From Andalucia godoyi And28 (taxonomy: Eukaryota > Protista > Jakobida): a stretch of DNA of 64,000 nucleotides. The stretch is taken from assembly GCA_009859145.1 (NCBI GenBank), contig VRVR01000008.1, positions 71,494 to 135,493 on the forward strand, read 5' to 3'. Shown here piece after piece: positions 7,523-59,110 of this stretch. The notes below the pieces were generated by a model that saw only the letters and a program-made list of their open reading frames with translations, was not told the origin of the DNA and did no database searches. Position 1 is the first letter of the stretch; the number at the start of each line of letters is the position of its first letter. The position numbers and the translations under genes were made by a program.

Positions 7523-7605
7523 TGACAGCTGTGGGATTTGAACCCACGCATCCGGAGATACCACGACCTGAACGTGGCGCCTTAGACCAACTCGGCCAAA
7601 CTGCC
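7523..7605 (-). tRNA. tRNA-Leu(CAG)
   Basis: GGCAGTT/AGCTGTC acceptor stem, TGGCCGAGTTGG D arm, CCACG-TTCAGGT-CGTGG anticodon arm, long variable arm, GGTTCAAATCC T arm, and a T6 Pol III terminator at 7516-7511. Confidence 0.96.
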
Positions 7606-17498: not shown

Positions 17499-19682
17499 AT
17501 GCATCCATCCGCTGCGCCGCCCGCGTCCTCGTTGCCATACTACCATCTTGCGCCGTCTTACCCTCTTTCGTTTCCCACTCCACCACCCCTTGCTGCTCCG
17601 CTTTCACTTTCCAGCCATTTCCAATCTCCGCTTTCCTCTTCCACAGCCACGCATCACAATCATCCTGCATACCAACCACAGCAGGTGCTCGAACAGCATC
17701 ACCAGTTGTTATTGCAACAACAGCAACAGCAGCAGCAGTATTTGGGGAAATCTGGACGGGGCGCTCAAGGAACACACGAGACGATCCGAAAACGAACCCG
17801 TCATGCGTCTCCGTCGCACTCTTCTTCGGACAATGAACGCCAATTCCGGCATCCCACTCATGGTCGTCGTGTAGATGAGGACGAGGAAGACGAAGACGAA
17901 GACGAAGACGAAGACGAGGATGCGCTTCCCTCCAGGCCCGACATCAACCACCCCACAACCACTAACAACAACGGCAATAGCAATAGCAATAGCAATAGCA
18001 GTAGTAGCAGTGCGCTTGGAAATGCAAGTGCGAATGGACAGAGAGTTGCAAAGGCATGCACAGAGTGTCGATCCCTGAAGCGATCGTGTGATGGAAATGT
18101 CCCGTGTTCTCGGTGTGTAGAGCGCGGTGTTGCTCATCTGTGCTCCTATATCCCGCGCAAGAAGCGAACGACTTCCAGAAACAAGCACAAGGTATCTGAG
18201 AATAATACCAGCACCAGGAACAGCAAAGCCATTGCGAATGGGGTTGGAGGCGGGATCGCTGATGCCGACACAGGAACGTCCTCGGCAAGCACGATCTCCG
18301 TGGCGATGACGCAAGCTGGGCGATCCACTCCAAGCGCATTTTCGCCTTTGCCATTGCGCCCCGCACGTGTTGTTTCTCCCTCTGCTAGTCACTCTACAAA
18401 TGTCAGTAGTGCTGGGTCTTGTGCGACTGGTGGAGGTCATGCCACACCGTTACTCGGATACTCTCCTCTGCCGGAGTCATCGTCAACATCATGTTCGTCC
18501 TCGTCATCCTGCTCCTCATCATCGTCTGCTGCTGCTGCTGCTGCTGCTGGTGCACCTGCATCAACATCGTCGTCATCAGGTACGAGTGCTGCAGTCATGC
18601 CATTGTCATCATCGTCCTTACAGCTTCTTCAGTCGCAGTCGCAGTCACAGTCACAGTCGCAGTCGATGGGAATCGCGATGTATGAGCGATCGCCGTTCAA
18701 CTTTTCAGTCTCGAATTTTATTGCAACGCCGACAATCACATCAGATTTCTGGGGTGACGCATCTCCATTTACTCGATCGTTTTCCAATTCGATGCTTCCG
18801 TCCTCTTCCACGGGAGGAAACACGTCCACGATCGCATCGGCAGAAATCAAATCAGAGCTTCCATCTGCTTCCTCTTCTTCTTCCTCTTCTTCTTCTTCCT
18901 CTTCCTCTTCCTCTTCTTCCTCTTCCTCTTCTTCTTCTTCTGCTGCTGCTGCTTCCTCATCTTCTTCCTCTGCTACTGTTGCCACTGTATCCGATGAGGG
19001 CTCCGGTTCTGCTGTTGATGAAGAAGCGACGAAAGCGTCAATGACAACGACCGAAGCATCAGGTTTGCATCCGCTGGCGATGGAGATTATGAATTCGCAA
19101 GACCCGTTTGTACGGTCGAGTCCGATGTTCCGGTACTTGTCAAAACACATTGCGGCGATTGATGTACCGACGCTTCATTTTGTTCGCGAATTTCTGCGAA
19201 CAGTTTCCGAGGAAGAACAGAAAGCCGGTGCGGGAGGGTCACTTTGCCCTGGAAAGATGCATGCAGACTCTATTGATGTGGATGCGTTGCTTCGAAAGGA
19301 TGCCGTGTTGCGAACCGCGATTGAGAATGCAGTGGGCGTGCTCAACACGCTTGCATTTCCGGCGTTCATTATGGTGAACAAGGGCCGAATGTACCGGTAC
19401 AACAGCGCACTCGTCGAGCTCAGTCCATTCACTCGCGAGGAGCTGGACGCTGAGCAGTTCGACGTGCTCGAGCTCTTTGCAGAAGAGTCTCTCGTCAGCT
19501 TCATGCAGACCATTCTCAGGATTCGACACAATCGAAGACTCAATTCCATCACAATGAAGTCTGTCCTCAAAAAGAAGAACGGCGACAGAACTCCATACAT
19601 TGCAGGATGGACATTCTTCAAGGATCGACACGACACCATGATTTGTGGCTCTTTGGTTGTCCTCATGCCTTTTCCCACGTAG
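17499..19682 (+). CDS. Zn2Cys6 + PAS-like transcription factor, array member 1
   Basis: CTECRSLKRSCDGNVPCSRCVERGVAHLCSYIPRKKR; C-terminal FPAFIMV..GRMYRYNSAL..FTREEL...KKKNGD PAS-type fold; likely ATG at 17499. Confidence 0.9.
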   Translation: MHPSAAPPASSLPYYHLAPSYPLSFPTPPPLAAPLSLSSHFQSPLSSSTATHHNHPAYQPQQVLEQHHQLLLQQQQQQQQYLGKSGRGAQGTHETIRKRTRHASPSHSSSDNERQFRHPTHGRRVDEDEEDEDEDEDEDEDALPSRPDINHPTTTNNNGNSNSNSNSSSSSALGNASANGQRVAKACTECRSLKRSCDGNVPCSRCVERGVAHLCSYIPRKKRTTSRNKHKVSENNTSTRNSKAIANGVGGGIADADTGTSSASTISVAMTQAGRSTPSAFSPLPLRPARVVSPSASHSTNVSSAGSCATGGGHATPLLGYSPLPESSSTSCSSSSSCSSSSSAAAAAAAGAPASTSSSSGTSAAVMPLSSSSLQLLQSQSQSQSQSQSMGIAMYERSPFNFSVSNFIATPTITSDFWGDASPFTRSFSNSMLPSSSTGGNTSTIASAEIKSELPSASSSSSSSSSSSSSSSSSSSSSSSSAAAASSSSSSATVATVSDEGSGSAVDEEATKASMTTTEASGLHPLAMEIMNSQDPFVRSSPMFRYLSKHIAAIDVPTLHFVREFLRTVSEEEQKAGAGGSLCPGKMHADSIDVDALLRKDAVLRTAIENAVGVLNTLAFPAFIMVNKGRMYRYNSALVELSPFTREELDAEQFDVLELFAEESLVSFMQTILRIRHNRRLNSITMKSVLKKKNGDRTPYIAGWTFFKDRHDTMICGSLVVLMPFPT

Positions 19683-19946
19683 TCGAGGGCAGTCCACGCC
19701 CATCTCTCTCTGTACAACATACGGTCACTATCCGCATCTTATGATTGCATTGGCATTCAGAATTCCGGATGGTCTCTGTCGAAATGATATGATATTCTCG
19801 TCTCGTCTCGTCTTTTTTGTTCTTTTTATTTATTTTTTATTTATTTAATAGGCATCGTTACGATGTTGATGTAAATGTAAATGTACACCGGAAAGAAAAA
19901 AGTAAAAGTATAAATAATCAGAGAGAGGGAAGGGGCGGAAAGTAAA

Positions 19947-21707
19947 CTATTCGGACGGGAGCTCTGGGAGCAACACGGAGGGTATAGGAATGAGCTGCAT
20001 GAGCGTGCACAGGACGATTCCGTTTTGCGAGTGTCTGATGAAGGTGATCGCGTTGAGGTATTCTACGCGTTGGTGGTCGCGACGTTTGACATGGCATCGA
20101 AGAGACAGTGTTTGCATGCCGCGGTTCATATGCGCACTCATGAGCTGCTGGATGCCGTCGTTCATAACACCTTCGTCCGAGTTGACCTTGACGTCGAACA
20201 GGTCAATCACTTCGAAACTACCACTCTCGAGATCGGAACGGGGGAAAGGAAGCAAATCCACAAGGACACTGTTTACACGGCTCAGACAGCCCTTGTGATC
20301 CACGATAAAGGCCGGAAACAATGTTGAATCCATAATCCGGTGTGCCTTCTCAAGGCTGTGAGCAGCCGTCGGATCCACAACCGCAATGTTTTTCAGAAAA
20401 TCGGGCCCAAGCTGCGCTGCCATCATGAGCTCATCACGCAGTTTTGTAAAGAGAAACGGCCGATGCTGCAGGATAAGCTGCAGAGCGTCGGGCCGCACGT
20501 TGTGAAGATTTTTAGACAACAAACGAAACAAAGGAAATTTCTCAAGCAAATCGTCCGGGGTGTCGCGCAACAATAGATGGAAGAGTTGCATCGTCGACAG
20601 CGATGCAGCTGTTTGCGAACTGATAACGGTACCCGTTGATGCACCGGAAGTCGGCAATGCACCACTGGATAAAGACGAAGATGCGGAGGCAGACATGGAA
20701 GACGAAGACGAAGATGACAATCCTGGAAATGCATGGTCAGTACTGCTGGAGCCAAATGCTGGAGTAAACGACGCAAGGTCAAAGAGCCAAGACTCATTGG
20801 CGTGTGACGATGGAGAATGGGGTGAAGCGAATGTTGCAAACTGCCCAGAGTCCAACTGGCTGAGGAAACTCATCAGATCGGATGGAAGATCGCCAGCACC
20901 AACCGAAGGAACCAGGGATTGGAGTGGGTTGGTGTTAGCGATCGCATCAAACTGGATGCCATGCCCATTCCCGTCGCTGGATCCAAACGATTGGTTGCCA
21001 ACACTCAATGATTTCGCCGTTTCTGACGCTGACAATGTTGATAGCGACGATGATGACGACGAAGATGAAGAAGACGAAGAAGACGAAGAAGATAAAGCAG
21101 ATGGAGACAATGCACTCGCAATAGGCATAGAAATTGTAGCTTCCTTCGAAAATGCATTTCCAACAAACGACGTATCCGAGCTTGAATTGGACCGCGATCG
21201 ATATTCATGAGACTGCGGTGCTGGCGACGACGACGACATAAAGTCATTTGATGCAGAGGAGTATGGCGATGCATAACTGTGGCTTGGCGAAATCGTCTGA
21301 AGGCGCCGCGTGGCGACCAAGTTTTGAGCATTGAGCAGCTTTGGAATGGGTACATTGACGCTCTCTGGACCAATTCGGCGTTGCTTCTTTTTCCGTGGGA
21401 GATACGAACAAAGATCTCCAATTCCTCGCTCAATACACCGCCCACACGGTTCTTGTCCATCACAGGACCTCTTAATCTCTCGGCAACAAATACACGCCTT
21501 CGGCACACGCTTGGTGCGCGAATTGTCCGCCGACACATCGTTTGGATTCACAGAATTCCCTCGGTCTTCTTCTTCTTCAACCTCGTGGTCTCCTCTTCCT
21601 CCACCACCACCCCCAGCTTCTTGAACAGACGAAACAAATATCGTTACTTCTGGATGTGGTCTCTTCTTTGATGCAACTTCAGCTATGGAAGTCGACTGTT
21701 TTTGCAT
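19947..21707 (-). CDS. Zn2Cys6 + PAS-like transcription factor, array member 2
   Basis: CICCREIKRSCDGQEPCGRCIERGIGDLCSYLPRKKK; C-terminal FPAFIVDHKG..RVNSVL...VKRRDHQRVEYLNAITFIR; likely ATG at 21707. Confidence 0.9.
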   Translation of the reverse strand: MQKQSTSIAEVASKKRPHPEVTIFVSSVQEAGGGGGGRGDHEVEEEEDRGNSVNPNDVSADNSRTKRVPKACICCREIKRSCDGQEPCGRCIERGIGDLCSYLPRKKKQRRIGPESVNVPIPKLLNAQNLVATRRLQTISPSHSYASPYSSASNDFMSSSSPAPQSHEYRSRSNSSSDTSFVGNAFSKEATISMPIASALSPSALSSSSSSSSSSSSSSSSLSTLSASETAKSLSVGNQSFGSSDGNGHGIQFDAIANTNPLQSLVPSVGAGDLPSDLMSFLSQLDSGQFATFASPHSPSSHANESWLFDLASFTPAFGSSSTDHAFPGLSSSSSSSMSASASSSLSSGALPTSGASTGTVISSQTAASLSTMQLFHLLLRDTPDDLLEKFPLFRLLSKNLHNVRPDALQLILQHRPFLFTKLRDELMMAAQLGPDFLKNIAVVDPTAAHSLEKAHRIMDSTLFPAFIVDHKGCLSRVNSVLVDLLPFPRSDLESGSFEVIDLFDVKVNSDEGVMNDGIQQLMSAHMNRGMQTLSLRCHVKRRDHQRVEYLNAITFIRHSQNGIVLCTLMQLIPIPSVLLPELPSE

Positions 21708-21973
21708 TATTTCAAAACAACTAAAATTAACATAAGAAAGCAGCACAAGAAGCAGCTCGATGATAATTAGCAACAACCACAACCAAAACAACAGCAGGAA
21801 CAGGAACAGGAACAGGAACAATAATAAATAATGATATGATAATAAACGATACTTCAGTAACAAATATAATCGAAAGAGAACAAAATAGTACTTTGGAAGA
21901 AGAAGAAGAAAACCATTGCTACTCGTTGGAATAATCGGATTGCGGCACTTTGAAGGATGAAAGAAAAAGTCCG

Positions 21974-22258
21974 ATGCGGAAGTATACATAAGCAGAGACG
22001 GTCGTGCTTATGCACGCTCGGCCAAAATTCAGCCGGTGACACAGGCTCCGCATTTTCGACACTCTTTAACGCAGCATCCGTAGCCATCTATCATTCTATC
22101 ATTCGTTGGTTTCACTTTTTGCAACGTCTGTTCCATAAGGCGACCGAGTATCGCGAGCGCCATGTTACCAGGGGCCTATCCGCTTCCCGGCAACAGGATG
22201 CAAGACTGAATATGCATGTCTATTCGTAGATATGCATACTCAGTGTATAATGTAGGCG
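21974..22258 (+). mobile_element. Fanzor2/TnpB-like relic B, internally deleted, with omegaRNA-like right end
   Basis: WFHFLQRLFHKATEYRERHV joins directly to GGGGCCTATCCGCTTCCCGGCAAC...TGTAGGCG. Near-identical to blocks in 62238-62715 but lacks the zinc-ribbon/RuvC-III segment. Confidence 0.8.
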
Positions 22259-22616: not shown

Positions 22617-24884
22617 CTATCGTGTGATTGGATAAAGCTGAAGAGATGCACCAATCATGCGGAGTGTCGATGGGTTTCTCAAAACAACAAGAGACGCAAC
22701 ACATTCCTCGGACGATCCGGAAGGAGAATGCTTCAGCGAACAGCGGAAATGAACGCGCCCGTTATGTTCCAGATCGACCGCACACTGCATGGCCTGCGCG
22801 ATCCGCGCAGAAGAAGAAGAAGTAGTAGTAGTAGTAGTAGAAGAACTGGTAGAAGAAGAAGAACTCGGTTGCAAATGCGAGCTTGTTGAGAATGGCATTC
22901 CAAAGTAACCAGCAGTCAGCGTAGCCGCAATGCACACAGTCGGCAGTGCAAACTCTAGAATGTCAAAGAGATTGGCATCGACAAGAAAAAGATTATCGCT
23001 TCCAATACTTCCAATCTGCGATTTGCCGTCATAATTCACATACTGCGCACCCAGGCGATTCACCATGTGAACGGTGCAGTTGGGACTCATCCAAAAAGAC
23101 GGCGTCTGGACAGAGATGTTTGGGTCCGCCATAACAGATGCTCCCAGAAACGCACGATCCTCTATCTGCATATTGTTCACAAAATGCGAGTTCGACGCAT
23201 CCGTCCCTTCGAGTGAGGATGCTGCTGCGAGAACCATTCGCAACGAAAACAATACTTGCACTACTTCCAGCGACAAGCTTGCCATCCACGATGTGTCGGA
23301 CGCCGCTTTCTGCAGTGCCTTGTACAGTCCCGTGGAAGCAAATAATACAGAATGCGGCGTTTCGACTAAATCCTTCAGATACGCATTCATCGAAGGGCCG
23401 TTCAGGTTATAATTCAAGGAATGATTGCCGCTGATGCTCAGCCCTGGCTCTGCCGCAGCTCTGCTGTTGCTCGTACTATTGTTCGTACTATTGTTCGTAC
23501 TCGAGCTGCTGCTCGACGACTTGGAAACACCAGAAGTCGGTGAAATGGAAGATGCTGAATTGGAGATATACGACGTCGTTGTCAAGGACAGTCCGTTTTT
23601 GCCAGAATCATGGTCAGCACTGCGGTTGGAATGCGCATAGTCGCTATAATCGTGGAAGGTGTACTTGCTGACGCTCTTGTGATCCAGCGAGAGAAATGGA
23701 GAAGAACTGGCCATGTGGTCCGAATTAGAGTTGGCGGAACCACCACTCCCTATCCGCGAGCCACTGGCAATGCTTCCTGCTACACAGGACTCCGCATTCT
23801 GAAGAGGAAGTGGATGAGAGTGTGTATGTCTATTGTTGGAAGCCACAAAGGTGGAGGCCAAGGAGGATGCGGAGTTGGCAGATGATGATGCACTCGCGGG
23901 TCCATGATGATGGTGAGCGGTCGCCAATCCACTGCTCCCAGCACAAGCCGATGTAGACGGTGTGTTTGAGCCGGCGGTAGAAAGAAACGCATCTCCAATG
24001 GGCAATGAGGGAACCGGTACCGATGGCTTTCGAGTCGATTTCTGCGAGTGTTTCTTTCTTGGAACGTATCGACACTCATCTGGAATCCCGCGTTCGACGC
24101 ATCTGGAGCACGGGGTCTTTCCATCGCAGGCGCGCTTAATCTCACGGCAGCATACACAAGCAGCTGGGATTCTGACTGCCTTTTGATTGGCATCGGCACT
24201 GCTCTTTCGGCTCCCTCCTGGTCCTCCGAGAGACGCCGCCAAACACCCATGGATGACGGAATTGTTGTTGTTCACGTCAAAGAAATCTTCTTCCGAGGAA
24301 CATGGACTCGTCACATCCTGGATGTCCATGGGTGAATGCACGGAGCCCAACGCAACTTTTGAAGTAGCATGTCCGTTTGAAAACTCCTCCTTAGCGAAAC
24401 TCTCAGATCGATCGTGAGTGCCAACAACACCGTTTCTGAAACCAAGTTGGAGCACGGACGCATCCAGTACGGGGCCCTTGGGAATGTCAATTGCTGGTGC
24501 AAACGCGGGGGGAAACAGCATGCCATACTGCGACTGCAGAGCGGTCCATGGATCGGAGTGACTGGCAATTTCCAGATCGCCGTGCAGCCTCGACGGGTCG
24601 GAATTGCTGCCCCCTGGACCAAATGAATCGCCGTTCTGCTGGGCTACCGATTGCGGGAAAGAGCTGCCACTCAAGAACTGCTGTGGATTGAAGAACGGAG
24701 GCGGCTGAAAGTTGAACGCCGGCTGCACGGTACCGTTCGCCGCAAGAAACGCGCTCAATGTCTCGAAACTCAAAATTGGTGGAGGAGGCGGGGGCACAGC
24801 ATTTGCAGTTGAAAGACCCTGTGATCCACTGATGTGGTCTAGCCCAGACTGCACAGGATTCTGGAGGGTTGTCCAAGGATCCAT
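22617..24884 (-). CDS. Zn2Cys6 + divergent PAS-like transcription factor, array member 3
   Basis: CVCCREIKRACDGKTPCSRCVERGIPDECRYVPRKKH; C-terminal PSFWMSPNCTVHMVN...LFDILE...FRCSLK...CVASLVVLR; likely ATG at 24884. Confidence 0.88.
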   Translation of the reverse strand: MDPWTTLQNPVQSGLDHISGSQGLSTANAVPPPPPPILSFETLSAFLAANGTVQPAFNFQPPPFFNPQQFLSGSSFPQSVAQQNGDSFGPGGSNSDPSRLHGDLEIASHSDPWTALQSQYGMLFPPAFAPAIDIPKGPVLDASVLQLGFRNGVVGTHDRSESFAKEEFSNGHATSKVALGSVHSPMDIQDVTSPCSSEEDFFDVNNNNSVIHGCLAASLGGPGGSRKSSADANQKAVRIPAACVCCREIKRACDGKTPCSRCVERGIPDECRYVPRKKHSQKSTRKPSVPVPSLPIGDAFLSTAGSNTPSTSACAGSSGLATAHHHHGPASASSSANSASSLASTFVASNNRHTHSHPLPLQNAESCVAGSIASGSRIGSGGSANSNSDHMASSSPFLSLDHKSVSKYTFHDYSDYAHSNRSADHDSGKNGLSLTTTSYISNSASSISPTSGVSKSSSSSSSTNNSTNNSTSNSRAAAEPGLSISGNHSLNYNLNGPSMNAYLKDLVETPHSVLFASTGLYKALQKAASDTSWMASLSLEVVQVLFSLRMVLAAASSLEGTDASNSHFVNNMQIEDRAFLGASVMADPNISVQTPSFWMSPNCTVHMVNRLGAQYVNYDGKSQIGSIGSDNLFLVDANLFDILEFALPTVCIAATLTAGYFGMPFSTSSHLQPSSSSSTSSSTTTTTTSSSSARIAQAMQCAVDLEHNGRVHFRCSLKHSPSGSSEECVASLVVLRNPSTLRMIGASLQLYPITR

Positions 24885-25060
24885 CGCTGATCTGATGTGA
24901 CAGCAGCCGGAAATCAGAAAAAGGACACAAGAGCCACCAGATGAACCACAGGTCGACAAAACGGGCGGGGGGAGGAAAGCCAAAAGGGTCCAAGTGTGCA
25001 GATCGGTTCTGAGCAAGCACAAACAAAATGAACTCACAATCGCTGGAAATTGATACTCGG

Positions 25061-25108
25061 TCTCTCTGTCTCTCTGTCTCTCTGTCTCTCTGTCTCTCTG
25101 TCTCTCTG
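25061..25108. repeat. (TCTCTCTG)6 microsatellite upstream of array member 3
   Basis: Six perfect 8-nt units read directly. Confidence 0.9.
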
Positions 25109-26439: not shown

Positions 26440-28026
26440 TTACATCATTAGATCAAACGATTGTGCGGAGGCCGCAAACTCCAGGGCCGATCCGGCATTC
26501 GGCAGAGCATGGACAACCATAAATAAGACGCGGTGCGAGCTGTGCCGCAGAAACGACACTCCTGCAGTGTATTCAACGCGTTGTTTGTCGCGCCTGCGGA
26601 AACTCAGCGGGCAGGATATTGCATCCAGTTTTGGATTTTCGTGGGCGTCCAGGAACATGCTGATGCGTTCAGTCCAGTTCGACAACGGATCCACGAGGTC
26701 AAAGACATCAAAGTCTTCTCGCTCGATTTCTTCTCTTGAAAAGTCGATGACGTTCAGCAGTGGCGAGTTGAATGCGTACAATCTGGAGCCGGCGATGATG
26801 AACGCTGGGAACCGGAATGTCTGCACTGACAAACGAGCAGCTTCTAATTGTTCTCCCAGAACCGGATCCGACTTTGCAAGCAACAGGGCATCCGAGTATG
26901 TTGGGACGAACGCCCGCGCCTCTGCATCGACCTTTAGGAATCGCGATGCATGCTTTAGAATGATCTGGAGAGACTCGAGGGGAATCCGGTCTTGATTGCG
27001 AATCATAAATCGGTACAACTGTGACTCACGAAGCTTTGCATCCGGCGTCTCTCGCAGCTGCTTCAAGACGGCCTCTCGAGTTGGGTCGTTCACATCCCGG
27101 AAGACAGGGCTCGAGAAAAAAGAAATCGGCGGAAATCCAAACATATCACTCAGTTGATGCAGACTGTCGACAATGCTCAGGTCGTCCGCACACAGCGGAA
27201 ATGGTGGTAATGTGGATGACAGCACGTTGGGGGCGTTCGTTCCAGAACAAGGTCCCACAGACAGCGAATTTCGGGGGAGGGGTGATTCGCTTGCAAGCCG
27301 CGGAGTCTTTGAGGCCGGTTCGTCGTGCATTTCGAGACCATCCGAGACAGGCGACTGATGCGTTGCTTTCCGAGTGTACGCATACACAAAACTGCTATCC
27401 GGATCCGAGGAGTGCTGCTTTCCATGTTCGTCGCATGTTTCCTCCAAGACGCCCTCGCCTACTGCATTTACACTTCTTCTTCTTGTTCCCCCTCTGCCCA
27501 TTTCTCTTTCCAGCTCCTTTTCCTTCTTCTTGAGACGCGGCCTTCGAGGCACATACGTGCATTCATGTTCAATGCCTCGCTGAACGCACCGGCTGCACGA
27601 AGGCATTGCGGCATCGCAGGCGCGTTTAACAGCTCTGCACTGCAAGCAAGCACGTGGCGCACGACTTTGCTCTACAATTCGAATAAACCCAATAATACGA
27701 TGGTCCTGTGTTTGAGATTCGCTGTCGTTTTCTAACGACAGCTGTGAAAAGGAAGCTGGATTGGCGACCATTTGCGACACTGCGCTTGTCGGTCGACCTC
27801 CCAAGGACGGCTCCGAGGACTTTGCGCTCGCTGTTGTTGTTGTAGCTATCGCTGTCGAAGGTGGTGGTAGTTGCGGTGGATTTGGTAGCAGTAATAGTGG
27901 TGACGATGTTGACGAGGATGACGGTGGTGACGATGGACCCGCTTCATGCAGCGATTGGGCATCCATCGCGAAGGGTGCATCATCGGGCAGCGCGGAGCCT
28001 ACAGAAGAACCCAAATGGTTGTCCAT
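26440..28026 (-). CDS. Zn2Cys6 + PAS-like transcription factor, array member 4
   Basis: CLQCRAVKRACDAAMPSCSRCVQRGIEHECTYVPRRPR; C-terminal FPAFIIAGSRLYAFNSPLL...FRRRDKQRVEYTAGVSFLR; ATG at 28026 or 28125. Confidence 0.9.
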   Translation of the reverse strand: MDNHLGSSVGSALPDDAPFAMDAQSLHEAGPSSPPSSSSTSSPLLLLPNPPQLPPPSTAIATTTTASAKSSEPSLGGRPTSAVSQMVANPASFSQLSLENDSESQTQDHRIIGFIRIVEQSRAPRACLQCRAVKRACDAAMPSCSRCVQRGIEHECTYVPRRPRLKKKEKELEREMGRGGTRRRSVNAVGEGVLEETCDEHGKQHSSDPDSSFVYAYTRKATHQSPVSDGLEMHDEPASKTPRLASESPLPRNSLSVGPCSGTNAPNVLSSTLPPFPLCADDLSIVDSLHQLSDMFGFPPISFFSSPVFRDVNDPTREAVLKQLRETPDAKLRESQLYRFMIRNQDRIPLESLQIILKHASRFLKVDAEARAFVPTYSDALLLAKSDPVLGEQLEAARLSVQTFRFPAFIIAGSRLYAFNSPLLNVIDFSREEIEREDFDVFDLVDPLSNWTERISMFLDAHENPKLDAISCPLSFRRRDKQRVEYTAGVSFLRHSSHRVLFMVVHALPNAGSALEFAASAQSFDLMM

Positions 28027-28449
28027 TGACTTTCCAAATATTCGGCAAATCTTTAGGAGATAACACAAGATAAGGCGACGCACTTGTATGAAGAGGTGTC
28101 TTTTCTTAGCTGGAGGAGTTTTCATGTATTTATCCTCCACGTCAAAAGATCAACATCTGGATAATCCGGACAGAATCGCCGAACTGCTTTGTCGGAGTCG
28201 GGACATTTCCTCAACAGCCGATCAGCGACTAGACGAGCAGACTGTGCGTGTATGATGACTCCATGAGAGTATATATATATATGTATGTATGTATTTTTAC
28301 TATTTATTTTTGCGCTGAACAGTGAACAGAGTGCAGTCATGTCTTGAAAGCCTGCAAGGTAAGCCAGGATAGGGGAAAGACAAAACATAATGCAATGTGA
28401 TTGCTTTTTTATTGTTTTTAAACTAAAAACATAAATTAAAAAATCATTG

Positions 28450-30354
28450 CTAATCCTTTGGAAGGGGTGTGAGTTCAATGAGGGTGTAGAAGATGGAGCC
28501 AGATTCCGAGTGGCGGATGAACGACATCCCGGCAACGTACTGCACAATTTTGTGATCCTTCCTCTTCAGCACGACGGACGCGGAATAGGATTGTATTTTT
28601 GGATTTTCTTGTGCGTTCACGAAACGCCTCATCATCTTGGTTAGGGAACACGATGAAATATCGACGAGGTCCATGGGATCAAAAGACGGATTCTCGAGCT
28701 CTGCCCGCGAATAAATAGAATCCTCCACAAGCGAGGAATTGAACTTGTACAAGCCCCGTGCACGAGACAGAATGTACGTGGGAAACTTTCTACCGTCGAC
28801 GATCAATCGAGCAGATTCGAGAGCCTGGCGCATCAGCGAATCTGACGCGAGAATAACGTCGATGCGAGACAAACTGGACAACACAAATTGTTCGTTTTCA
28901 ACAATCCGCTCCACAGTCTTCCGATTGGAGGTGAGGAAATCAAAGAAGTCTTGGTCCAAGCAGCCCCCCATTTTTTGCAGAAATCGATGGAGACCTGAAG
29001 AGCGAATCCTTTCCGTGGGTGCTACCAGGTATTCAACAACGGCAGGATGCGAGCACAACAACGGAGCAATCGGTGGGGATCCCGAAGAAGAGGTCGATTC
29101 CGAATGCGTAGAATCTGCCAATGACGATGACGACGACGACGACGACGACGACGCAGTCTCGCCGCCGGGATGCTTGTCTTCGGAAACGGGGGCTGTAGAA
29201 CGCTTGCTATGCGGATTCTCCGTCCCATCATTCTTTTCACTGGCTGTCGGTCCTTGTGACGACGCGCTTTGGATGCAAGTCTGCGTCGGATGCTGCGCTG
29301 GCTGGGGCGACTGCTGAAGCGCATGCGAGCTCGACGACCCGACATTGCAAGGCTCAAAATGCGACACCGAAAACCGAATATCAGGCGTCGGAATCGGAGA
29401 GTTGAAGAACGAATACGGTGGAGAATGGTCCACCAAAGAAACACCAAAAGGAAACATGGAATCGATTATTCCACTGGACGACGACGCCGATCGGGAAGGA
29501 CACCACGGTTTTGAGGACTCCGACTGCATCATCCCTTGCAGCGATCCGGCAGCATTACCCGAACCAAATGCTGCAGGAATTGCCGCTTGCGAAGCACTCT
29601 GACCGCCGTGGAGGCTCGAACACGGAATAATGGGAGAAGCAGGTGACGGCGGAATCGCGGTGGACCGGCTCCGCATCTCCATCTGCCGTCGGTTCTCATC
29701 AGCCCCTTCTACGCTACCATCTGATGCGGAATGGTCGTCGTCGCCCTCGTCGTCCTCCTCATTGTCATCGTCTTCGTCGTCCTCATCATCATTATTCTCT
29801 TCTTCTACTCCTCGTTGTCGTTCACCATGCGTCATACTCGATCGATTGCCGTTTGTTTTTCTCTGATTCGATGGATCAGAACCGTTTTGCTTCTTCTGTC
29901 TTCGTTCCTTCTTCTTCCTCGGAATATAGGAACAAGAATGGGCGCAGCCACGTTCCACGCATCTCGTGCACGGATATCCGCCATCGCAGGACCGCTTAAT
30001 CAGTCTGCAAGCAACGCACGCTTTTGACACGCGTCGCTGGCGTTTTGCAGCCTGCGATTGCGATTGCGACGGTACCTCAGAAGCTCGGTCTCTCTTCAGA
30101 TTCATCTCGGAAGACGGCGGCGCCTGATGCTGCCGTTGAACTTGCGGCTGCAGTCGCTCATGCTGCTGTTGCTGATGATGCGGATGAGGATGAGGATGAA
30201 GTCCTGAAGATGAAGCTTGGGATATAATTTCCGACTGAAACCGCAAGATTTCCTGGACTGTTTGTGGCGGGAACGCAGAGAAAATCGATGCATTGCTCGG
30301 ATGCATTCGAGGGAATAACGATGCGTCAACTTGGGGACTGTGGTTATGTTGCAT
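28450..30354 (-). CDS. Zn2Cys6 + PAS-like transcription factor, array member 5
   Basis: CVACRLIKRSCDGGYPCTRCVERGCAHSCSYIPRKKK; C-terminal FPTYILSRARGLYKFNSSL..YSRAEL...LKRKDHKIVQYVAGMSFIR. Confidence 0.9.
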   Translation of the reverse strand: MQHNHSPQVDASLFPRMHPSNASIFSAFPPQTVQEILRFQSEIISQASSSGLHPHPHPHHQQQQHERLQPQVQRQHQAPPSSEMNLKRDRASEVPSQSQSQAAKRQRRVSKACVACRLIKRSCDGGYPCTRCVERGCAHSCSYIPRKKKERRQKKQNGSDPSNQRKTNGNRSSMTHGERQRGVEEENNDDEDDEDDDNEEDDEGDDDHSASDGSVEGADENRRQMEMRSRSTAIPPSPASPIIPCSSLHGGQSASQAAIPAAFGSGNAAGSLQGMMQSESSKPWCPSRSASSSSGIIDSMFPFGVSLVDHSPPYSFFNSPIPTPDIRFSVSHFEPCNVGSSSSHALQQSPQPAQHPTQTCIQSASSQGPTASEKNDGTENPHSKRSTAPVSEDKHPGGETASSSSSSSSSSLADSTHSESTSSSGSPPIAPLLCSHPAVVEYLVAPTERIRSSGLHRFLQKMGGCLDQDFFDFLTSNRKTVERIVENEQFVLSSLSRIDVILASDSLMRQALESARLIVDGRKFPTYILSRARGLYKFNSSLVEDSIYSRAELENPSFDPMDLVDISSCSLTKMMRRFVNAQENPKIQSYSASVVLKRKDHKIVQYVAGMSFIRHSESGSIFYTLIELTPLPKD

Positions 30355-30652
30355 TTATGAACAGCATGTGAAAGAGACGCTGGGGAATGGATAAACAAGC
30401 AGTAAGAAAAGGGACTAGAACATGGACGAAGCGTGCGCGAAGCAAAATAAAAATAAACACACACACGCACACACACATACACATACACAGAGAAACAAGC
30501 AAATCAACATGACAAGACGGAAAAGAGGGAAATGATTCGCAATCTTCGTTTCTCCAATCGGGAAAACAGAAATTTTCGGGAGAAATTGCCGCGTTTACAG
30601 AAGATATGGAGTAGGGTCATGTTTTACGACTTTCTTGAAAACCTTTCGCGAA

Positions 30653-32773
30653 TTACGAGTTGAGGGGGACAAGGATGATGACGGAACCTGCGATGTGGCC
30701 AGTGGTGATTCTGAGAAAATGGAAGCCAAGGACATGGGACACCGGTGCAGAGCCTTTCACTATGTGTAAATCAACGGTTACCGAGGCTCGATTGGTGGAG
30801 GATGTCGCTGCCTGCGCTTGCTGGAAGGCAAACAACACACGGGCAAAGTGCGGTGGCTCAATGAGGTCCAGGACAGACCGGGTGCCGGCGACCAAGTCAT
30901 CCACAGTCGTCACACCGCACAGAAGCAACATGTCTGCAAACTCTGTGTTCCAGAACACTGCTTTGCCAGACAGAGAAATCACTGCAGCTGGAAACACAGA
31001 CGACTCCACCAATTTGCGACCACGATCATATGCAGTGTACAGGATTGGATGTGCGTCGACAAGGGACTGCCACGGTCGAAGAAAAACAGATTGCTGGCCG
31101 CTACTCTCCAATAGCGACCGTCGATACAACAACACGGCAGAAAGGACAGAGTCGTCAAGATCCAGAATCCGCTGGCGTGCATACTTCAGGAACATACACT
31201 GAGACAGGGCAGTCACGGAAGGGTTGTTTGAATGAAGAGATGGAAACGCAGAAGACGACGCCGACGCGGACGACGACGCCGATGCGGACGACGACGCCGA
31301 TGCGGACGACGACGACGATGCGGATGATGATGAAGGCTGTGCGCTATGAAAATAATCATCCGAACAGTCGTTCAGCAATGCTGCAAGATCGATGATCTTT
31401 TGAGGATCCTGATCCAAAACGGCCTCGATCTGCGTGATCTGGATGACGCTTGACGATGTCGCAGACTCGTCTGAAAAATTGGCAGGTGCACCGACGAAAA
31501 AGTCCAAGTTATAAAAATACGGATCCAAGTTCGTTGCGCTCGCACTGCTGCTCACCGTGTTTGAAGCGACAGCAGAGGGAATCGGGACGGAAGGATTCAG
31601 CGCAGTAGCAGACGTGACTGCAGCCGGAATCGCATAAACTGGCGTGGATGATGACGGCATCGACGACGATGTGGATGGCAGGAATGATGCTGCTGCTCCC
31701 GCTGCCGCCAACGGTAATGATGTTGGTAAACCAGAAGAGGCAGTGGATAAAACAGATGGACCGGAGCCTGGAACTGCAGAAGAAGAGGACGACGACGACG
31801 ACGCCGACGTCAGTGATGAAGAAGATACAGGAAACATTGTGGCAGGATTTGAAGAACCAGTGGGAGTGGACATCATGGGATGCGCAATGACAAACGAAGC
31901 CGAGTCCGGAGTTCCGTACGAAGGAAAATTTGCAGCCGATGATCCAATCGTCACCGAGTTGAAGAACCGGTCCGTTTGGAACGGCAATGGTGTCAGCGAC
32001 GACGGAAGAGACGCGTATGGATAAGACATGACGGGTTGAACCACTGGAGTGGAGCTTGGCGTGGACCCAGACGCTGCTCCATAGGATGAAGACTGTAACA
32101 ATGATGAAGGTGACAATGAGAAAGACGCAGTGCTTGCAGCAACAACAGAAGATGCTACGGTGGAGGTGGAAGACGAGGGTTTCTGTGTCGAAGAAGCCGA
32201 GTGGATAAGTGCGGGGTGTCGCTCCATGGAGCTCGCCTGTCGATTGTTTCCAGTCACACTGGAAGTTGTGATTCGAACACTGCTGCCCGATTGGCTGGTC
32301 GAGAGCATTCTCCCAAGCTTTGAATTCTTTCGAGGGACATAGCAGCACAATTGGGAAGTACCGCGCTCGACGCATCGCAAGCACGGAAGCTGGCCATCGC
32401 ACTGCCGCTTGCCGCGTCGGCATTCCGTACATGCGCGTGGAATACGCTTTCGCGAATTCGCAGAGGCATATGGATGATCTGGTTTTCGACTGTTATCCTC
32501 TTCTTCGTCATCATCGTCATCATCGTCGTTCTCCTCCTGCTTTAGTCGTTGCGGTTGTAGTCTTTCCGTGAGACGCTGCTCTGGGTGATGTGGCTGATGC
32601 TGCTGCTGGTGCTGCTGGGGTTGATGTTGCGACTGATGCTGCGGATAGGATTGATATTGCGGAGTTGCGGAATACTGCTGGACTAGAGAATACTGATGTG
32701 GGTGATGTGACTGCATGATAATTGGCGTGTTCCCATTTTGCAGTTCGATATGGAGTGGCGTAACGCAGTCCAT
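30653..32773 (-). CDS. Zn2Cys6 + PAS-like transcription factor, array member 6
   Basis: CTECRRGKRQCDGQLPCLRCVERGTSQLCCYVPRK; C-terminal FPAAVISLSGKAVFWNTEFADML...SVLDLI...HVLGFHFLR; ATG at 32773 or 32716. Confidence 0.9.
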   Translation of the reverse strand: MDCVTPLHIELQNGNTPIIMQSHHPHQYSLVQQYSATPQYQSYPQHQSQHQPQQHQQQHQPHHPEQRLTERLQPQRLKQEENDDDDDDDEEEDNSRKPDHPYASANSRKRIPRACTECRRGKRQCDGQLPCLRCVERGTSQLCCYVPRKNSKLGRMLSTSQSGSSVRITTSSVTGNNRQASSMERHPALIHSASSTQKPSSSTSTVASSVVAASTASFSLSPSSLLQSSSYGAASGSTPSSTPVVQPVMSYPYASLPSSLTPLPFQTDRFFNSVTIGSSAANFPSYGTPDSASFVIAHPMMSTPTGSSNPATMFPVSSSSLTSASSSSSSSSAVPGSGPSVLSTASSGLPTSLPLAAAGAAASFLPSTSSSMPSSSTPVYAIPAAVTSATALNPSVPIPSAVASNTVSSSASATNLDPYFYNLDFFVGAPANFSDESATSSSVIQITQIEAVLDQDPQKIIDLAALLNDCSDDYFHSAQPSSSSASSSSSASASSSASASSSASASSSAFPSLHSNNPSVTALSQCMFLKYARQRILDLDDSVLSAVLLYRRSLLESSGQQSVFLRPWQSLVDAHPILYTAYDRGRKLVESSVFPAAVISLSGKAVFWNTEFADMLLLCGVTTVDDLVAGTRSVLDLIEPPHFARVLFAFQQAQAATSSTNRASVTVDLHIVKGSAPVSHVLGFHFLRITTGHIAGSVIILVPLNS

Positions 32774-33100
32774 GGAATTCTGCTTTGAAAACCAGGAAGG
32801 AGCAGCAGTGAGCAGAGTCCCGGGATTTCGATTTTGCTTTCAATACCTGCTTTATAAACCAAAGGCGCGCTTTTGCTCGTGATGGGCGAAGAGCAAACAC
32901 ATAATAAATAACAATAATAAAATCATTATTTTAATATGTATTAGATTAATTTTAAAAAATCGTTTTTACAAATTCGTCAAAAAGGAAAAGATTCGGCTCG
33001 GGTTCCGAACCTGACGAAATGCCGCCCGGACCTTGTCAGTTCGCTCCCCCTCTTCAGTGACATTATCCGGACATCGAGGAGACCTTTTGTCATTTCATTT

Positions 33101-33311
33101 ACAGTATTTCTCCTCCAACCCAAAACCTCCCCAAAACATTTGTCTCGTCTAAGACAGCTTTTATGACGTAAAGGGACTTCTTTTTTTTAATTTATTAATA
33201 CAGTCGGCATCAGCAGCGCCCATCATCGATTACAAGGAATCGATTGTCAGTATTCGACAGCGATATCACAGCCATCCACCAGACGTTTGGGTTTGCAGGG
33301 TTTATAAAAAT
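33101..33311. mobile_element. MITE-like element copy 2 (inverted relative to copy 1)
   Basis: CTCCTCCAACCCAAAACC...GTTTGGGTTTGCAGGG ends; colinear blocks with the reverse complement of 16866-17123, including a 29-nt identity. Confidence 0.75.
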
Positions 33312-33901
33312 CAGCGCAAAAAAGAATCCTGGAAACGGTCGTAGAGCTCACAACCCATCTACAGTATCACAGACGCCCCTTACGTGAGACTCCAAAACTC
33401 GCTTGAACTGGGAATGCCCGGTGGATTCCCACGCAAGCACGGTGTGTCGCTGGATTCGCAAGCATCCTCATGGGCATCCTCTTTGGGTGCTGGCGGAACC
33501 GAAATATAAAGGGAGTACAAGGTCATTTCCCCACGGCCGCAACATTCTTCCGTCCGCAGCACCCGTCGATTGGTTCGAAATTCCACAGAGGCACGACAAC
33601 TACGGTCGGTGGCGACGACAGAGTCCCTGAAAGAGGGCAAGGATGAAGACGAAAAGGATAAACCAATTTTTCTTTTGACACAACAAAATATAACACAAGA
33701 GGAAAGGAGAAACATAAGACGAGAAAGGGATTTCGGAATTGAATTTTATGGAAACGCCCTTATGCGGGAAGAAGAGGAGACTCGCATTGCGTTTTGCTGG
33801 TTTCTCTTTTTTCGTATTCATCAAAAATCCTCACCCCTCAGATTTTTGATACTTTTATTTAAAATAAAGATAGTCACTACTATACACGAGGAATGAGCTC
33901 T

Positions 33902-35776
33902 TCACAGCAAAAATGCAGGAACAGCAGACGGGTGGGTTGTAACAGTGGGAGGAAGAGGAGTGCAGAAACCAACAACCCCGATCAGAGCATCTCGAGAATC
34001 CCGAACAAACGAGTGGCCGACAGAGTACAGAACGTCTGCGCGGTCCTTCCTTTTCAGTTTTAAAAGCATCACATTTGTCTTGAAACCGGGGTTCTCCTTG
34101 GCATGAATGACCATGGGAAGGATATGTTTCAAAGTCTCTTGCTCTTGCTCCCAGATTTCACACGGATTGAAGTCCGAAGCCAGCAACTGTTCGCGAGTAA
34201 ACACGGAGATATCCAAGAGAGCACCATTAATTTGGTAAAAAAGCCCCTTCGCAGCCACCATGAACGCAGGAAAGGGAAAGCTGTGGATTGCTCGGATCAT
34301 GTCTTCCATTCGACTGCGCAGAAGCGCATCTTCTGCCATCAGAGCATCCACACCAGAAGAAATTCTCTGAGTGGACACCGGATCGGAATACTTGATCCGA
34401 TTCTTGAATTTTCCAATGATTTCCAGCAATGGCTTGTCAAGCTCAAATGCGTGCTTGAGAGCAAAGGCAAGGATCGTTTCTTGCCTCACCTGCGGATCTG
34501 CCGCAAGTACTTCGTGGCATATCTCAACAATAAGCGGATGAAGAATTCCGGGAGGCGACTCAGAGGATGCCGGAAACCCGGACGGTGCTCCTGAGGAGGA
34601 AACCTTTGTGACAACGCAATCAGCAGAATTGGTAGTGCTAGATGTAGCTGACGACGACGACGATGACGACGACGACGGGACCGTATGAAGTTCCGGAGGC
34701 CATTCATGTCTCAATTGGATGTCCGAATTGGTTACAGGACCTTCCACCAACGGACACGCAGATATCGCTGCCTCAAAATTGGATACGTCTGAGAACATGG
34801 ATATGAACTCCGTAAGCAGTGTTTGAAATTTCCGCACATCTGCGTCAGAGGCTGCAGTAGAAGGCTGCTGTTCCGTCACGGGGTCCAAAGGGACATCCTG
34901 AGCAAGTAAGGACTGGATCTTCATTACCTGTTGAGAATGAGGAAAAGACGGGCCACCCGCAGGAGAAAGGTGGTGTGCACATTGTTGAGCGACACTGGAG
35001 CTCAATGCAGCATTGCTCACACCAGGGATCGTTTGTGGTGCGTGAACAGTTGCCCTGTGAGGCAAGTAATGCACAGGCCCTTGGGAAGACGCCGAAATGA
35101 ACGCTGATTGGTGAAACTGAGGATTCTGAACAGGAAACAGACCCCCACTCGCAACACGGGACCTTGCATACACATCAGAAATGCCACTGCAGGAGTTAGG
35201 TTGTAGATGTTCTTGTTGCTGCTGCAATAGTTGGTGCTGCTGGAATAGTTGGTGCTGCTGCTGATGATGCTGAGGTGCATAAAAGCGGTCCACGCCTGGC
35301 ATACCTGGTCGCGGTAGATGCAAGTGGGGCGAGTGAAAGTGCTCGGGATTTGGAGACGCAAGCAAGTGCCGTCCGCTAGCAAACGGTGGAAACGACTGAA
35401 TGGCCGACGCGGTCTTCATCGAAGAAGCCGTCATACACTGGTCTGAGGAATGCTGCTTCGCTGCAGAAGTTGTAAAGGATGGCTCATGAAACAATTCCGG
35501 AATCCCACCAGGCCGGCAAGTCCTCTTTTTTCGAGGCATGTACAAACACTGAGATGCCACTCCTCGATCTATGCAGCGGCTGCAGGGCTGTTTTCCGTCT
35601 CCGTCGCAGGACCTTTTTAATGCGCGACACTCTGAGCATGCCCGATGGCTGCGGCCAGCCACGGAAATCCGTTTCCGGGATTTCCGAGAACCATCATGTG
35701 CATCCACTGGGAACTGGCACGCTTCGTCCTCACTATCCGAGGACGACGTGGACTGTTCTTCGATTGCAGTGATCAT
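33902..35776 (-). CDS. Zn2Cys6 + PAS-like transcription factor, array member 7
   Basis: CSECRALKRSCDGDGKQPCSRCIDRGVASQCLYMPRKKR; C-terminal FPAFMVAAKGLFYQINGALL..FTREQL...LKRKDRADVLYSVGHSFVR. Confidence 0.9.
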   Translation of the reverse strand: MITAIEEQSTSSSDSEDEACQFPVDAHDGSRKSRKRISVAGRSHRACSECRALKRSCDGDGKQPCSRCIDRGVASQCLYMPRKKRTCRPGGIPELFHEPSFTTSAAKQHSSDQCMTASSMKTASAIQSFPPFASGRHLLASPNPEHFHSPHLHLPRPGMPGVDRFYAPQHHQQQHQLFQQHQLLQQQQEHLQPNSCSGISDVYARSRVASGGLFPVQNPQFHQSAFISASSQGPVHYLPHRATVHAPQTIPGVSNAALSSSVAQQCAHHLSPAGGPSFPHSQQVMKIQSLLAQDVPLDPVTEQQPSTAASDADVRKFQTLLTEFISMFSDVSNFEAAISACPLVEGPVTNSDIQLRHEWPPELHTVPSSSSSSSSSATSSTTNSADCVVTKVSSSGAPSGFPASSESPPGILHPLIVEICHEVLAADPQVRQETILAFALKHAFELDKPLLEIIGKFKNRIKYSDPVSTQRISSGVDALMAEDALLRSRMEDMIRAIHSFPFPAFMVAAKGLFYQINGALLDISVFTREQLLASDFNPCEIWEQEQETLKHILPMVIHAKENPGFKTNVMLLKLKRKDRADVLYSVGHSFVRDSRDALIGVVGFCTPLPPTVTTHPSAVPAFLL

Positions 35777-59062: not shown

Positions 59063-59110
<48 letters not shown>

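Follow-up and report, generated by a model that had tools for sequence, protein, structure and literature searches.

A tandem array of seven divergent zinc-cluster regulator genes, six with a recognizable C-terminal PAS module, in a probable jakobid genome

Seven consecutive genes in the window (the whole stretch of 64,000 nucleotides analysed here) are probably a tandem array of old paralogous, sequence-specific transcription regulators, which belong to a lineage-restricted family and would pair through a C-terminal helical-PAS module; we put the probability of this reading at about 0.7. Zn2Cys6 regulators are usually held to be fungus-specific, as is stated outright in passages of recent papers (PMC12719309). 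The family described here bears on the question of whether this regulator class is older than fungi, and it offers a second, independent sample of zinc cluster-PAS coupling, in a deep-branching free-living flagellate.

Organization of the array

The array spans positions 17499-35776 and consists of intact open reading frames (ORFs), one on the plus strand and six on the minus strand, with no convincing ORF, tRNA or Rfam match found in the gaps within it. This is the arrangement given by an earlier, sequence-only reading of this DNA, which had seen no unrelated gene between the seven. Each gene encodes one Zn2Cys6 cluster, and exactly seven clusters were found in the 64 kb by a profile of the family DNA-binding domain together with the regular expression CX2CX6CX5-12CX2CX6-8C; an eighth match to the expression lies in a non-coding frame and lacks profile support. 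The proteins share one order of parts, namely the N-terminal zinc cluster, an xYxPRKK motif, a Ser-rich or low-complexity linker, a helical region and a C-terminal alpha/beta module. The PAS-only gene mentioned in the same reading proved to be a paralogue (g0), recognized by the C-terminal profile and separated from the array by about 10 kb, in which a tRNA gene and further genes lie. All eight ORFs (g0-g7) are uninterrupted over 413-755 codons counted from inferred starts, in DNA of about 49% G+C; the true start codons and linker lengths are likewise inferred, and several ORFs are open upstream of the likely ATG. The genes are as follows.

g0, 5755-6996, minus strand: paralogue without a zinc cluster (PAS-only), with the PAS module broken by two low-complexity inserts; C-terminal profile E 1.8e-21 in three pieces, translation without a Cys cluster, no Pfam match.
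g1, 17499-19682, plus strand: Zn2Cys6 cluster 18057-18143, acidic, Q-rich and S-rich regions, helical and PAS region 19059-19679; Zn_clus 29.4 bits, C-terminal profile E 4e-69; start taken as the first ATG within ORF 17403-19682.
g2, 19947-21707, minus strand: Zn2Cys6 cluster 21408-21494, S-rich linker, helical and PAS region 19971-20597; Zn_clus 23.9 bits, C-terminal profile E 1e-61; start put at Met95 of ORF 19947-21989, because the codons before it form a Leu/Phe-rich run.
g3, 22617-24884, minus strand: Zn2Cys6 cluster 24072-24158, C-terminal region (22620-23396) that has strongly diverged and carries long S/T inserts; Zn_clus 25.6 bits, gene model matched by database protein P0005 (755 aa).
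g4, 26440-28026, minus strand: Zn2Cys6 cluster 27559-27648 with a loop longer by one residue, short linker, helical and PAS region 26482-27084; Zn_clus 29.8 bits, C-terminal profile E 4e-61, gene model matched by P0001 (528 aa).
g5, 28450-30354, minus strand: Zn2Cys6 cluster 29932-30018, acidic and S-rich linker, helical and PAS region 28453-29058; Zn_clus 24.9 bits, P0002 (634 aa), AF2 pLDDT 82.9, top Foldseek matches PAS/LOV.
g6, 30653-32773, minus strand: Zn2Cys6 cluster 32342-32431, long S/A-rich linker, helical and PAS region 30656-31213; Zn_clus 26 bits, faint PF00989 match, C-terminal profile E 1.5e-43.
g7, 33902-35776, minus strand: Zn2Cys6 cluster 35546-35638 with a loop longer by two residues, Q-rich and S-rich linker, helical and PAS region 33941-34543; Zn_clus 25.5 bits, faint PF00989 match, P0003 (624 aa), C-terminal profile E 2.5e-63.

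The zinc-cluster DNA-binding domain

All seven array proteins score above the gathering threshold of the Pfam model Zn_clus (PF00172; 23.9-29.8 bits against 21), which bears out the assignment of a Zn2Cys6 cluster to each of them. The clusters have the spacing CX2CX6CX5-7CX2CX8C, with the six cysteines invariant in a 12-sequence alignment and intact in every array gene. The same alignment shows conserved basic residues in the first helix (C-x2-C-R-x2-K-R-x-C), including an invariant lysine that we take to stand at the place of the CGG-contacting Lys18 of Gal4.

When the profile of this domain was compared with PDB sequences, the best matches were the solved DNA-binding domains of Hap1/Cyp1 (8.7e-10) and Pho7 (3.7e-6), and Put3, Cep3 and Gal4 (1e-3) were also matched. 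The array domains and these two best matches have the same Cys spacing and agree in the basic residues of their first helix, and the motif GVAHLC.Y is common to Hap1 and the array. Hap1 has a coiled coil and haem-responsive motifs after its cluster, and Pho7 binds in monomeric form; both lack a PAS domain. The array clusters run into PRKK and then into low-complexity sequence.

The C-terminal helical and PAS module

A C-terminal module some 200 amino acids long is common to six of the genes (g1, g2 and g4-g7). An AF2 model of the g5 module, computed from a 7-sequence alignment, consists of a helical cap and a PAS fold with the order b-b-a-a-a-a-b-b-b (pLDDT 82.9, pTM 0.80); strands E94-98 and E103-106, four helices and strands E157-164, E173-182 and E189-198 are modelled with a pLDDT of about 90. 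Foldseek returned 103 PDB matches to this model at E<=1e-3, all of them PAS/LOV among the matches listed (DosP, LOV2, NifL and AHR-ARNT, for example), with TM scores of 0.67-0.73 to single PAS domains of 110-120 residues. The fold was modelled for this one member; for g1, g2, g4, g6 and g7 the assignment comes from the alignment, in which the PAS signatures N-x-a-l-v-e-l-s-x-f-t-r-e-E-L and RKDG..v.y are seen. Pfam PAS models give weak matches across 18 modules of the family (PF00989 in 6/18, best E 9.7e-5; PAS_9 in 3/18; PAS_4 in 1/18, 1.1e-4), the window members reaching only E of about 0.15, and the family profile also finds metagenome proteins named PAS domain S-box by their source. By model and alignment, then, the C-terminal module of these six genes is a PAS domain, as had been proposed.

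The proposal of a single PAS-like fold in all seven holds for six. The C-terminal region of g3 is not recognized by the family profile built without g3, has an hhalign probability of 0.4%, and is poorly modelled (pLDDT 43.9, values of about 60-70 being confined to three strands and the final helix); it is thus too diverged to call, and we count six clear PAS modules rather than seven. The sequence-only reading had further suggested that the modules sense different ligands, and this found no support. No Cys or His that could serve as a cofactor residue is conserved in the alignment, where the invariant or near-invariant positions are only F, P, N and P; a sensor role is therefore unsupported, and partner specificity would account just as well for the divergence of the modules.

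Several other regulators couple a DNA-binding domain to a dimerising or signal-responsive PAS domain, among them the bHLH-PAS proteins (AHR/ARNT/HIF), the bZIP-LOV aureochromes, the GATA-PAS protein White Collar, and EL222, and the structural matches of the g5 model include AHR-ARNT, the LOV domain of aureochrome 1a and EL222. The array proteins differ from all of these in the class of the DNA-binding domain and, in the alignment, in having neither a flavin-binding Cys motif nor a conserved haem-ligand His. Moreover, their PAS module is placed at the extreme C-terminus, 150-330 disordered residues away from the DNA-binding domain, unlike in other factors of this kind.

Relatives, divergence and age of the paralogues

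An exhaustive search of 1.84 billion representative proteins with the module profile gave 70 matches at E<=1e-3 and 14 at E<=1e-10, the latter comprising the window's proteins, Andalucia godoyi proteins of the same layout and a few environmental sequences. All five full-length outside members have both the Zn2Cys6 cluster and the helical-PAS module (P0006, P0014, P0044 and P0054 from A. godoyi, and P0072 from a metagenome), and P0006 is the nearest relative of g2. Beyond this locus, at least five members of the family are recorded for A. godoyi: ANDGO_05150 (KAF0852617.1), ANDGO_03369, ANDGO_00930, ANDGO_05708 and ANDGO_01396. None of them is identical to a window gene, and they would be either additional paralogues within one genome or orthologous members from a sister organism; four have the Zn2Cys6 and helical-PAS layout and ANDGO_01396 is PAS-only, and their annotations read only mitochondrial GAL4 domain-containing protein or hypothetical protein. 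Among protein collections, the window's proteins were found only in EukProt. The genome is compact and intron-poor and the only named relatives come from this jakobid, which agrees with the earlier impression of a non-fungal genome; the array most likely belongs to A. godoyi or to an organism close to it. No account of such a family was found in the literature searched.

The DNA-binding domains are 52-75% identical to one another (mean 61%), against 18-37% (mean 27%) for the PAS modules and 18% for the helical part, and the contrast drawn earlier between similar zinc clusters and strongly diverged PAS modules is thereby confirmed, as is the view of the tandem genes as a real paralogous Zn2Cys6-helical-PAS family. 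The g6 module is the most diverged of the six clear ones, with a PAS identity of 18-22% to the others. Outside members are as distant from the array paralogues as these are from each other, and the duplications are therefore old. A fragment of a g1 orthologue from another organism, 61% identical, was found in Logan contig L001; the comparison gives a pN of 0.33 and a pS of 0.77, the latter saturated, and these sequence data indicate that g1 is under purifying selection. The family is best read as lineage-restricted and tiny, with old duplications.

Alternative explanations

The closest known systems are Ert1/Rds2/Gsm1 of S. cerevisiae, AcuK/AcuM of Aspergillus, Aod2/Aod5 of Neurospora and Pas2-Rds2 of Cryptococcus; to our knowledge, this fungal Ert1/AcuK group comprises all the Zn2Cys6-PAS factors that have been studied, and its genes are dispersed. 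True homology with this group, in which the architecture arose once, was inherited vertically from an early eukaryote or acquired from a fungus by transfer, expanded locally and serves carbon or respiratory control, is unlikely in our judgement. In its favour, an N-terminal Zn2Cys6 cluster and a single C-terminal PAS domain occur in identical order in the fungal proteins and in six of the seven array genes, both sides have multiple paralogues, and Zn2Cys6 domains are overwhelmingly fungal. The fungal_trans domains (PF04082/PF11951) are absent at E<=1 from the array proteins, as they are from the fungal group. However, the PAS model of ERT1/acuK (PF24990, PAS_13) matches only 2/18 modules, at a best E of 0.11, far from significance and weaker than the generic PAS models, and no full-length window protein at E<=1; the published Pas2 PAS core NPEFCELVGKTDNELL (PMC12719309) is similar to NSALVELSPFTREEL, but the likeness is that of a generic PAS signature. 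No fungal Zn-cluster protein appeared at E<=1e-3 in the profile search of the 1.84e9 representatives, whereas bacterial-type PAS S-box proteins scored from 1e-20 to 1e-4. Ahead of the PAS domain, the array proteins also carry an additional helical cap, some 90 residues long, for which no counterpart was identified, and their genes lie, seven together, in a single tandem array of what is probably a jakobid. The best reading of these sequence comparisons is that the family is analogous to the fungal Ert1/Rds2/AcuK/AcuM proteins, the PF24990 score being insufficient for homology.

A decaying array, with some or most members silent or non-functional relics and with relaxed constraint as the source of the PAS divergence, is much less probable still. 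Such decay would fit the g3 module, which the profile cannot recognize and which models poorly, the long low-complexity inserts that interrupt the PAS regions of g0 and g3, and the fact that g1, g2 and g6 (3/7) were not encountered in the protein collections (the profile matches included none of the three, a direct search did not return g1, and the g6 ORF had no exact match). It is at odds with eight long open frames, with DNA-binding residues, including the six cysteines, intact in 7/7, with the selection indicated for g1, and with an architecture kept in outside members. The least probable alternative, to which we give hardly any credence, is that the proteins are not nuclear transcription factors and have a mitochondrial role or serve as non-DNA-binding scaffolds. 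P0006 was indeed named mitochondrial GAL4 domain-containing protein by its depositors (NCBI/UniRef), a name that stems from an in silico predicted mitochondrial proteome (PMC7050145); it rests on targeting predictors only, and GAL4 was not found among the listed entries of that paper's supplementary tables. Against such a role also speak the basic PRKK(K/R) that follows the cluster and the acidic and Gln-rich tracts, which together are typical of nuclear activators, and the solved Zn2Cys6 relatives, which are nuclear DNA-binding proteins.

Proposed function and significance

As sequence-specific regulators, the array proteins would probably contact CGG-type half-sites through the Gal4-type cluster, the basic PRKK right after it being a probable nuclear localisation signal and the long disordered acidic, Gln-rich or Ser-rich segments probable activation or regulatory regions. 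In canonical Gal4-type factors the cluster is followed by a coiled coil; the helical-PAS module is the likely dimerisation surface here, because no coiled coil is evident by eye at that place in the array proteins. Dimerisation through this module would resemble what has been proposed for fungal AcuK/AcuM. Several fungal Zn2Cys6-PAS paralogues form PAS-dependent heterodimers, obligate or cooperative, on CGG-containing sites of the CCG-N7-CCG type or CCGG, through which gluconeogenic or alternative-oxidase genes are controlled (PMC12719309).

By analogy with the AcuK/AcuM heterodimers (PMC12719309), a combinatorial pairing network is plausible. Divergence of the PAS modules would then set homodimer or heterodimer partner specificity and perhaps signal input, for which a ligand would be conceivable, and the cluster-less paralogues, g0 here and ANDGO_01396 in A. 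godoyi, might titrate the dimers or modify them. In its fullest and still doubtful form, this would be a jakobid (Discoba) Zn2Cys6-helical-PAS combinatorial dimer network with PAS-only titrators, whose architecture arose independently of Ert1/AcuK, by convergence, or in an early eukaryote; should the window be A. godoyi, it would comprise 13 members or more (seven in tandem, g0 and five dispersed, including the second PAS-only protein). An early-eukaryote origin, if true, would overturn the notion of the Zn2Cys6-PAS layout, and largely of the Zn2Cys6 class too, as a fungal invention. With seven near-identical DNA-binding domains, diverged PAS modules and a PAS-only partner, the locus is a compact natural test set for asking how dimer specificity depends on the divergence of the PAS modules. 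In practical terms the impact is modest: genetic manipulation of the organism is hard, and the functional roles are those that we infer.

Upstream regions

The upstream regions of the genes have no enrichment of CGG motifs; CGG-N9-CCG occurs upstream of g4 and g5, and the window as a whole has 11 such sites against 10.8 expected by chance. A separate observation is the sequence GCGGCAAT, chosen post hoc, which occurs upstream of g0, g1 and g5.

Organization of the array

Seven long ORFs occupy 17.4-35.8 kb of the window, with no other substantial long ORF between them.

Genes of the array, each a long ORF (positions in the window)
17499-19682, plus strand, g1
19947-21707, minus strand, g2
22617-24884, minus strand, g3
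26440-28026, minus strand, g4
28450-30354, minus strand, g5
30653-32773, minus strand, g6
33902-35776, minus strand, g7

The start codons of these genes are inferred, and those of g3, g4, g5 and g7 agree with database predictions (P0005, P0001, P0002 and P0003, respectively). Spacers within the array, the shortest of about 260 bp and the longest of about 1560 bp, hold only short ORFs of odd composition. Unrelated genes or RNAs hidden inside the array were considered and rejected, given that the spacers contain neither a tRNA nor any Rfam family, and these ORF, tRNA and Rfam checks bear out the sequence-only reading that no unrelated gene interrupts the seven. A perfect-looking repeat, (CTCTGTCT)x6.6, lies at 25056-25108, shortly upstream of the inferred g3 start; the spacer that contains it, at about 1.5 kb, is unusually long.

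In public annotation, the models of g1, g2 and g6 may be absent or different. These three are missing from the exhaustive module-profile matches in protein collections, where g3, g4, g5 and g7 are present; moreover, a direct protein-collection search did not return g1, and the full g6 ORF (30653-32773) had no exact match. The full ORFs span 17403-19682 for g1 and 19947-21989 for g2.

The C-terminal PAS module

The last ~200 residues of g1, g2, g4, g5, g6 and g7 can be mutually aligned. The g5 module was modelled confidently with AlphaFold2 from a seven-sequence alignment (pLDDT 82.9, pTM 0.80); the model places a helical region (residues 5-89, pLDDT ~60-80) against a segment whose elements follow each other as in PAS domains, b-b-a-a-a-a-b-b-b (pLDDT ~90). 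A Foldseek search of the PDB with this module gave 103 matches at E<=1e-3, the best 50 of the 103 being all PAS or LOV structures, such as DosP, phototropin LOV2, NifL, EL222, AHR-ARNT and aureochrome; normalisation on single PAS domains (110-120 residues) gave TM-scores of about 0.7. The alignment also contains the classic PAS signatures 'N-S-A-L-V-E-L-S-x-F-T-R-E-E-L' and 'RKDG..V.Y', several family members match Pfam PAS, PAS_9 or PAS_4 at about 1e-4, and the best module-profile matches outside the family are metagenome proteins named at source as 'PAS domain S-box-containing'. Together, the model, the structural matches, the signatures and the profile matches support the PAS-like fold that had been proposed for the C-terminus.

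This fold had been attributed to all seven genes, which holds clearly for six of them (g1, g2 and g4-g7), whereas g3 is degenerate or undecidable: its C-terminal region was not detected by a module profile built without g3, its hhalign probability is 0.4%, and its model, at pLDDT 43.9, is poor, reaching 60-70 only in three strands and a terminal helix. Across the module, only F, P, N and P positions are invariant or nearly so. A light-sensing LOV or haem-PAS identity was rejected, because the alignment has neither the flavin-Cys motif nor a conserved His, despite the presence of both types among the structural neighbours.

DNA-binding domain, divergence and selection

All seven array proteins match Pfam Zn_clus (PF00172) above the gathering score, and a six-Cys regular expression combined with a family profile of the DNA-binding domain (DBD) found one cluster in each gene, seven in all, and no other in the 64 kb. 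In a 12-sequence alignment the invariant core of the DBD is R-x3-A-C-x2-C-(R)-x2-K-x2-C-D-(G)-x2-3-P-C-x-R-C-x8-C-x-Y, followed in most members by a basic PR(K/R)K stretch. Among solved Zn2Cys6 domains, the profile of these 12 sequences matches Hap1/Cyp1 best (8.7e-10), then Pho7, Cep3, Put3 and Gal4, and the conserved Lys presumably occupies the position of the CGG-contacting Lys18 of Gal4, judging from a hand alignment with the Gal4 sequence. From these matches and the placement of this Lys, we reasonably infer that the DBDs would bind CGG-type half-sites.

The contrast between conserved DBDs and diverged PAS modules, already described in the sequence-only reading, was confirmed, since mean pairwise identity is 61% (range 52-75%) in the DBD, a figure that partly just reflects six Cys residues and a tight fold, compared with 27% (18-37%) in the PAS part and 18% (10-29%) in the helical part of the six clear members. 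In a neighbour-joining tree of the module, each array member is no closer to its neighbours than to other organisms' sequences, which indicates that the duplications are old. A fragment of a g1 orthologue, 61% identical and covering the 3' end of the gene, is present at 1-1007 of L001, a 1-kb Logan contig (SRR15836112); its frame, which includes a poly-Ser tract, remains open up to the 5' edge, showing that a g1 gene with the same linker style exists in a second organism. Over 284 aligned codons between g1 and this orthologue, pS is saturated (0.77) and pN is not (0.33), pointing to purifying selection on g1.

Family distribution and relation to fungal regulators

An exhaustive HMMER search of 1.84 billion representative proteins with the module profile gave 70 matches at E<=1e-3, 14 of them at E<=1e-10. 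Family matches include four proteins of the window and five further A. godoyi proteins, four with a Zn cluster and the module (ANDGO_05150, 03369, 00930 and 05708) and one with the module only (ANDGO_01396), while the remainder are Logan or JGI metagenome sequences, one of which, P0072, is full-length and likewise combines a Zn cluster with the module. Neither a fungal protein nor a Zn-cluster protein from outside the family appeared among these matches. Word-indexed protein searches returned only g4 itself for full-length g4 (a query swamped by low-complexity words), nothing for the 18-sequence module alignment, and only the Logan fragment of the g1 orthologue (P0004) for a linker-deleted g1. 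With a 6-sequence alignment, 95 pattern sites were found in a metagenome collection that evidently lacks the JGI contigs of proteins P0007-P0012, and tblastn confirmed 0 of them. A search for contigs that encode one of the window's proteins likewise gave no match. The A. godoyi members carry automatic names only; both NCBI and UniRef list ANDGO_05150 (P0006, KAF0852617.1) as 'mitochondrial GAL4 domain-containing protein', a name that probably misleads, given the Zn2Cys6-PAS architecture, and that appears to derive from targeting predicted in silico.

Of the systems already described, the fungal group of Zn2Cys6-PAS regulators Ert1, Rds2, Gsm1, AcuK and AcuM comes closest in architecture and function. 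Nevertheless, just 2 of the 18 modules matched the PAS model of that group (PF24990), with E 0.11 and more weakly than generic PAS models, and the matches of the exhaustive search included bacterial-type PAS proteins but no fungal ones; at the sequence level, therefore, membership in the fungal group is not established. Full-text literature searches found no description of Zn2Cys6-PAS proteins from non-fungal protists, jakobids included. The array family is a lineage-restricted form of an already known regulator type, unusual for its host and for its tandem arrangement.

A cluster-less paralogue and the upstream regions

About 10 kb from the array, and separated from it by a gene for tRNA-Leu and a number of unrelated genes, lies g0, presumably the gene that had been noticed as PAS-only.

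Features outside the array
5755-6996, minus strand, g0, PAS-only paralogue
7523-7605, minus strand, tRNA-Leu(CAG), found by Rfam and ARAGORN, the sole RNA gene detected in the window

The g0 product matches the module profile (E 1.8e-21) and has no Pfam match; two long inserts of low complexity (His/Gln- and Ser-rich) interrupt its PAS, and it has no Cys cluster. ANDGO_01396 is a similar cluster-less member.

Scans of the eight upstream regions (g0-g7) for CGG-Nx-CCG/CGG and for shared k-mers gave no convincing common element; apart from A/T-rich words, just two weak leads emerged. One is a CGG-N9-CCG inverted repeat found at 28167-28181, 155 bp upstream of g4, and at 30577-30591, 237 bp upstream of g5, with the related spacers CGGCGATTCTGTCCG and CGGCAATTTCTCCCG; across the window this pattern is not enriched (11 occurrences against 10.8 expected by chance). 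The other is the octamer GCGGCAAT, with three of its five window copies upstream of g0 (7421-7428), g1 (17174-17181) and g5 (30585-30592) and the other two inside the coding sequences of g3 and g5; picked post hoc, it is likewise not enriched in the window (5 against 3 expected).

Possible mode of action

The family would most economically be viewed as a set of nuclear, sequence-specific regulators, in which DNA binding and nuclear import may depend on the Zn cluster and basic tail, activation and regulation on the acidic, Gln-rich and Ser-rich tracts, and dimerisation on the helical-PAS module. Canonical Gal4-type factors dimerise through a coiled coil after the cluster; by eye, none was seen in this family, making the PAS module the likely pairing surface. 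For AcuK/AcuM, Aod2/Aod5 and Rse2, the argument for PAS pairing was built on point mutants of the PAS domain and on domain swaps (PMC12719309). Similar DBDs joined to diverged PAS domains would predict similar half-sites and different partner choice, and the cluster-less paralogues could act as natural modulators. The sequence-only reading, which saw paralogues binding related sites with different ligands or partners, was largely right in its observation, the array being real, and is partly supported in its interpretation, whose sensing and network ideas are hypothetical.

Genomic setting

The genes around the array are of ordinary eukaryotic housekeeping type.

Neighbouring genes in the window
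YEATS, NOG1, GILT-like ORF, RPS25
PGAP1-like gene, histidine ammonia-lyase
PEMT, NMP1-like gene
XRN1, HAD hydrolase
39966-52661, plus strand, BEACH-PH-WD40-FYVE protein with Arm-like repeats and a ConA-like domain, one uninterrupted ORF of 4231 codons

The window has about 49% G+C, and most long genes are single ORFs with short spacers, as in a compact, intron-poor eukaryotic genome; the uninterrupted BEACH-FYVE ORF illustrates how few introns it has. For the A. godoyi genome, a size of about 20 Mb, a predominance of intronless genes and spacers of about 217 nt have been described (PMC7050145). Other A. godoyi proteins and those of the window share the same Ser/Gln/His low-complexity style, and the window's proteins occur in EukProt only, as is also the case for A. 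godoyi proteins that are not mitochondrial. The ORFs of XRN1 (52709-57835, minus strand) and of the HAD hydrolase (57836-59116, plus strand) abut head to head with zero gap; translation of the HAD protein probably begins at an internal Met, so that the two genes would share a short divergent promoter.
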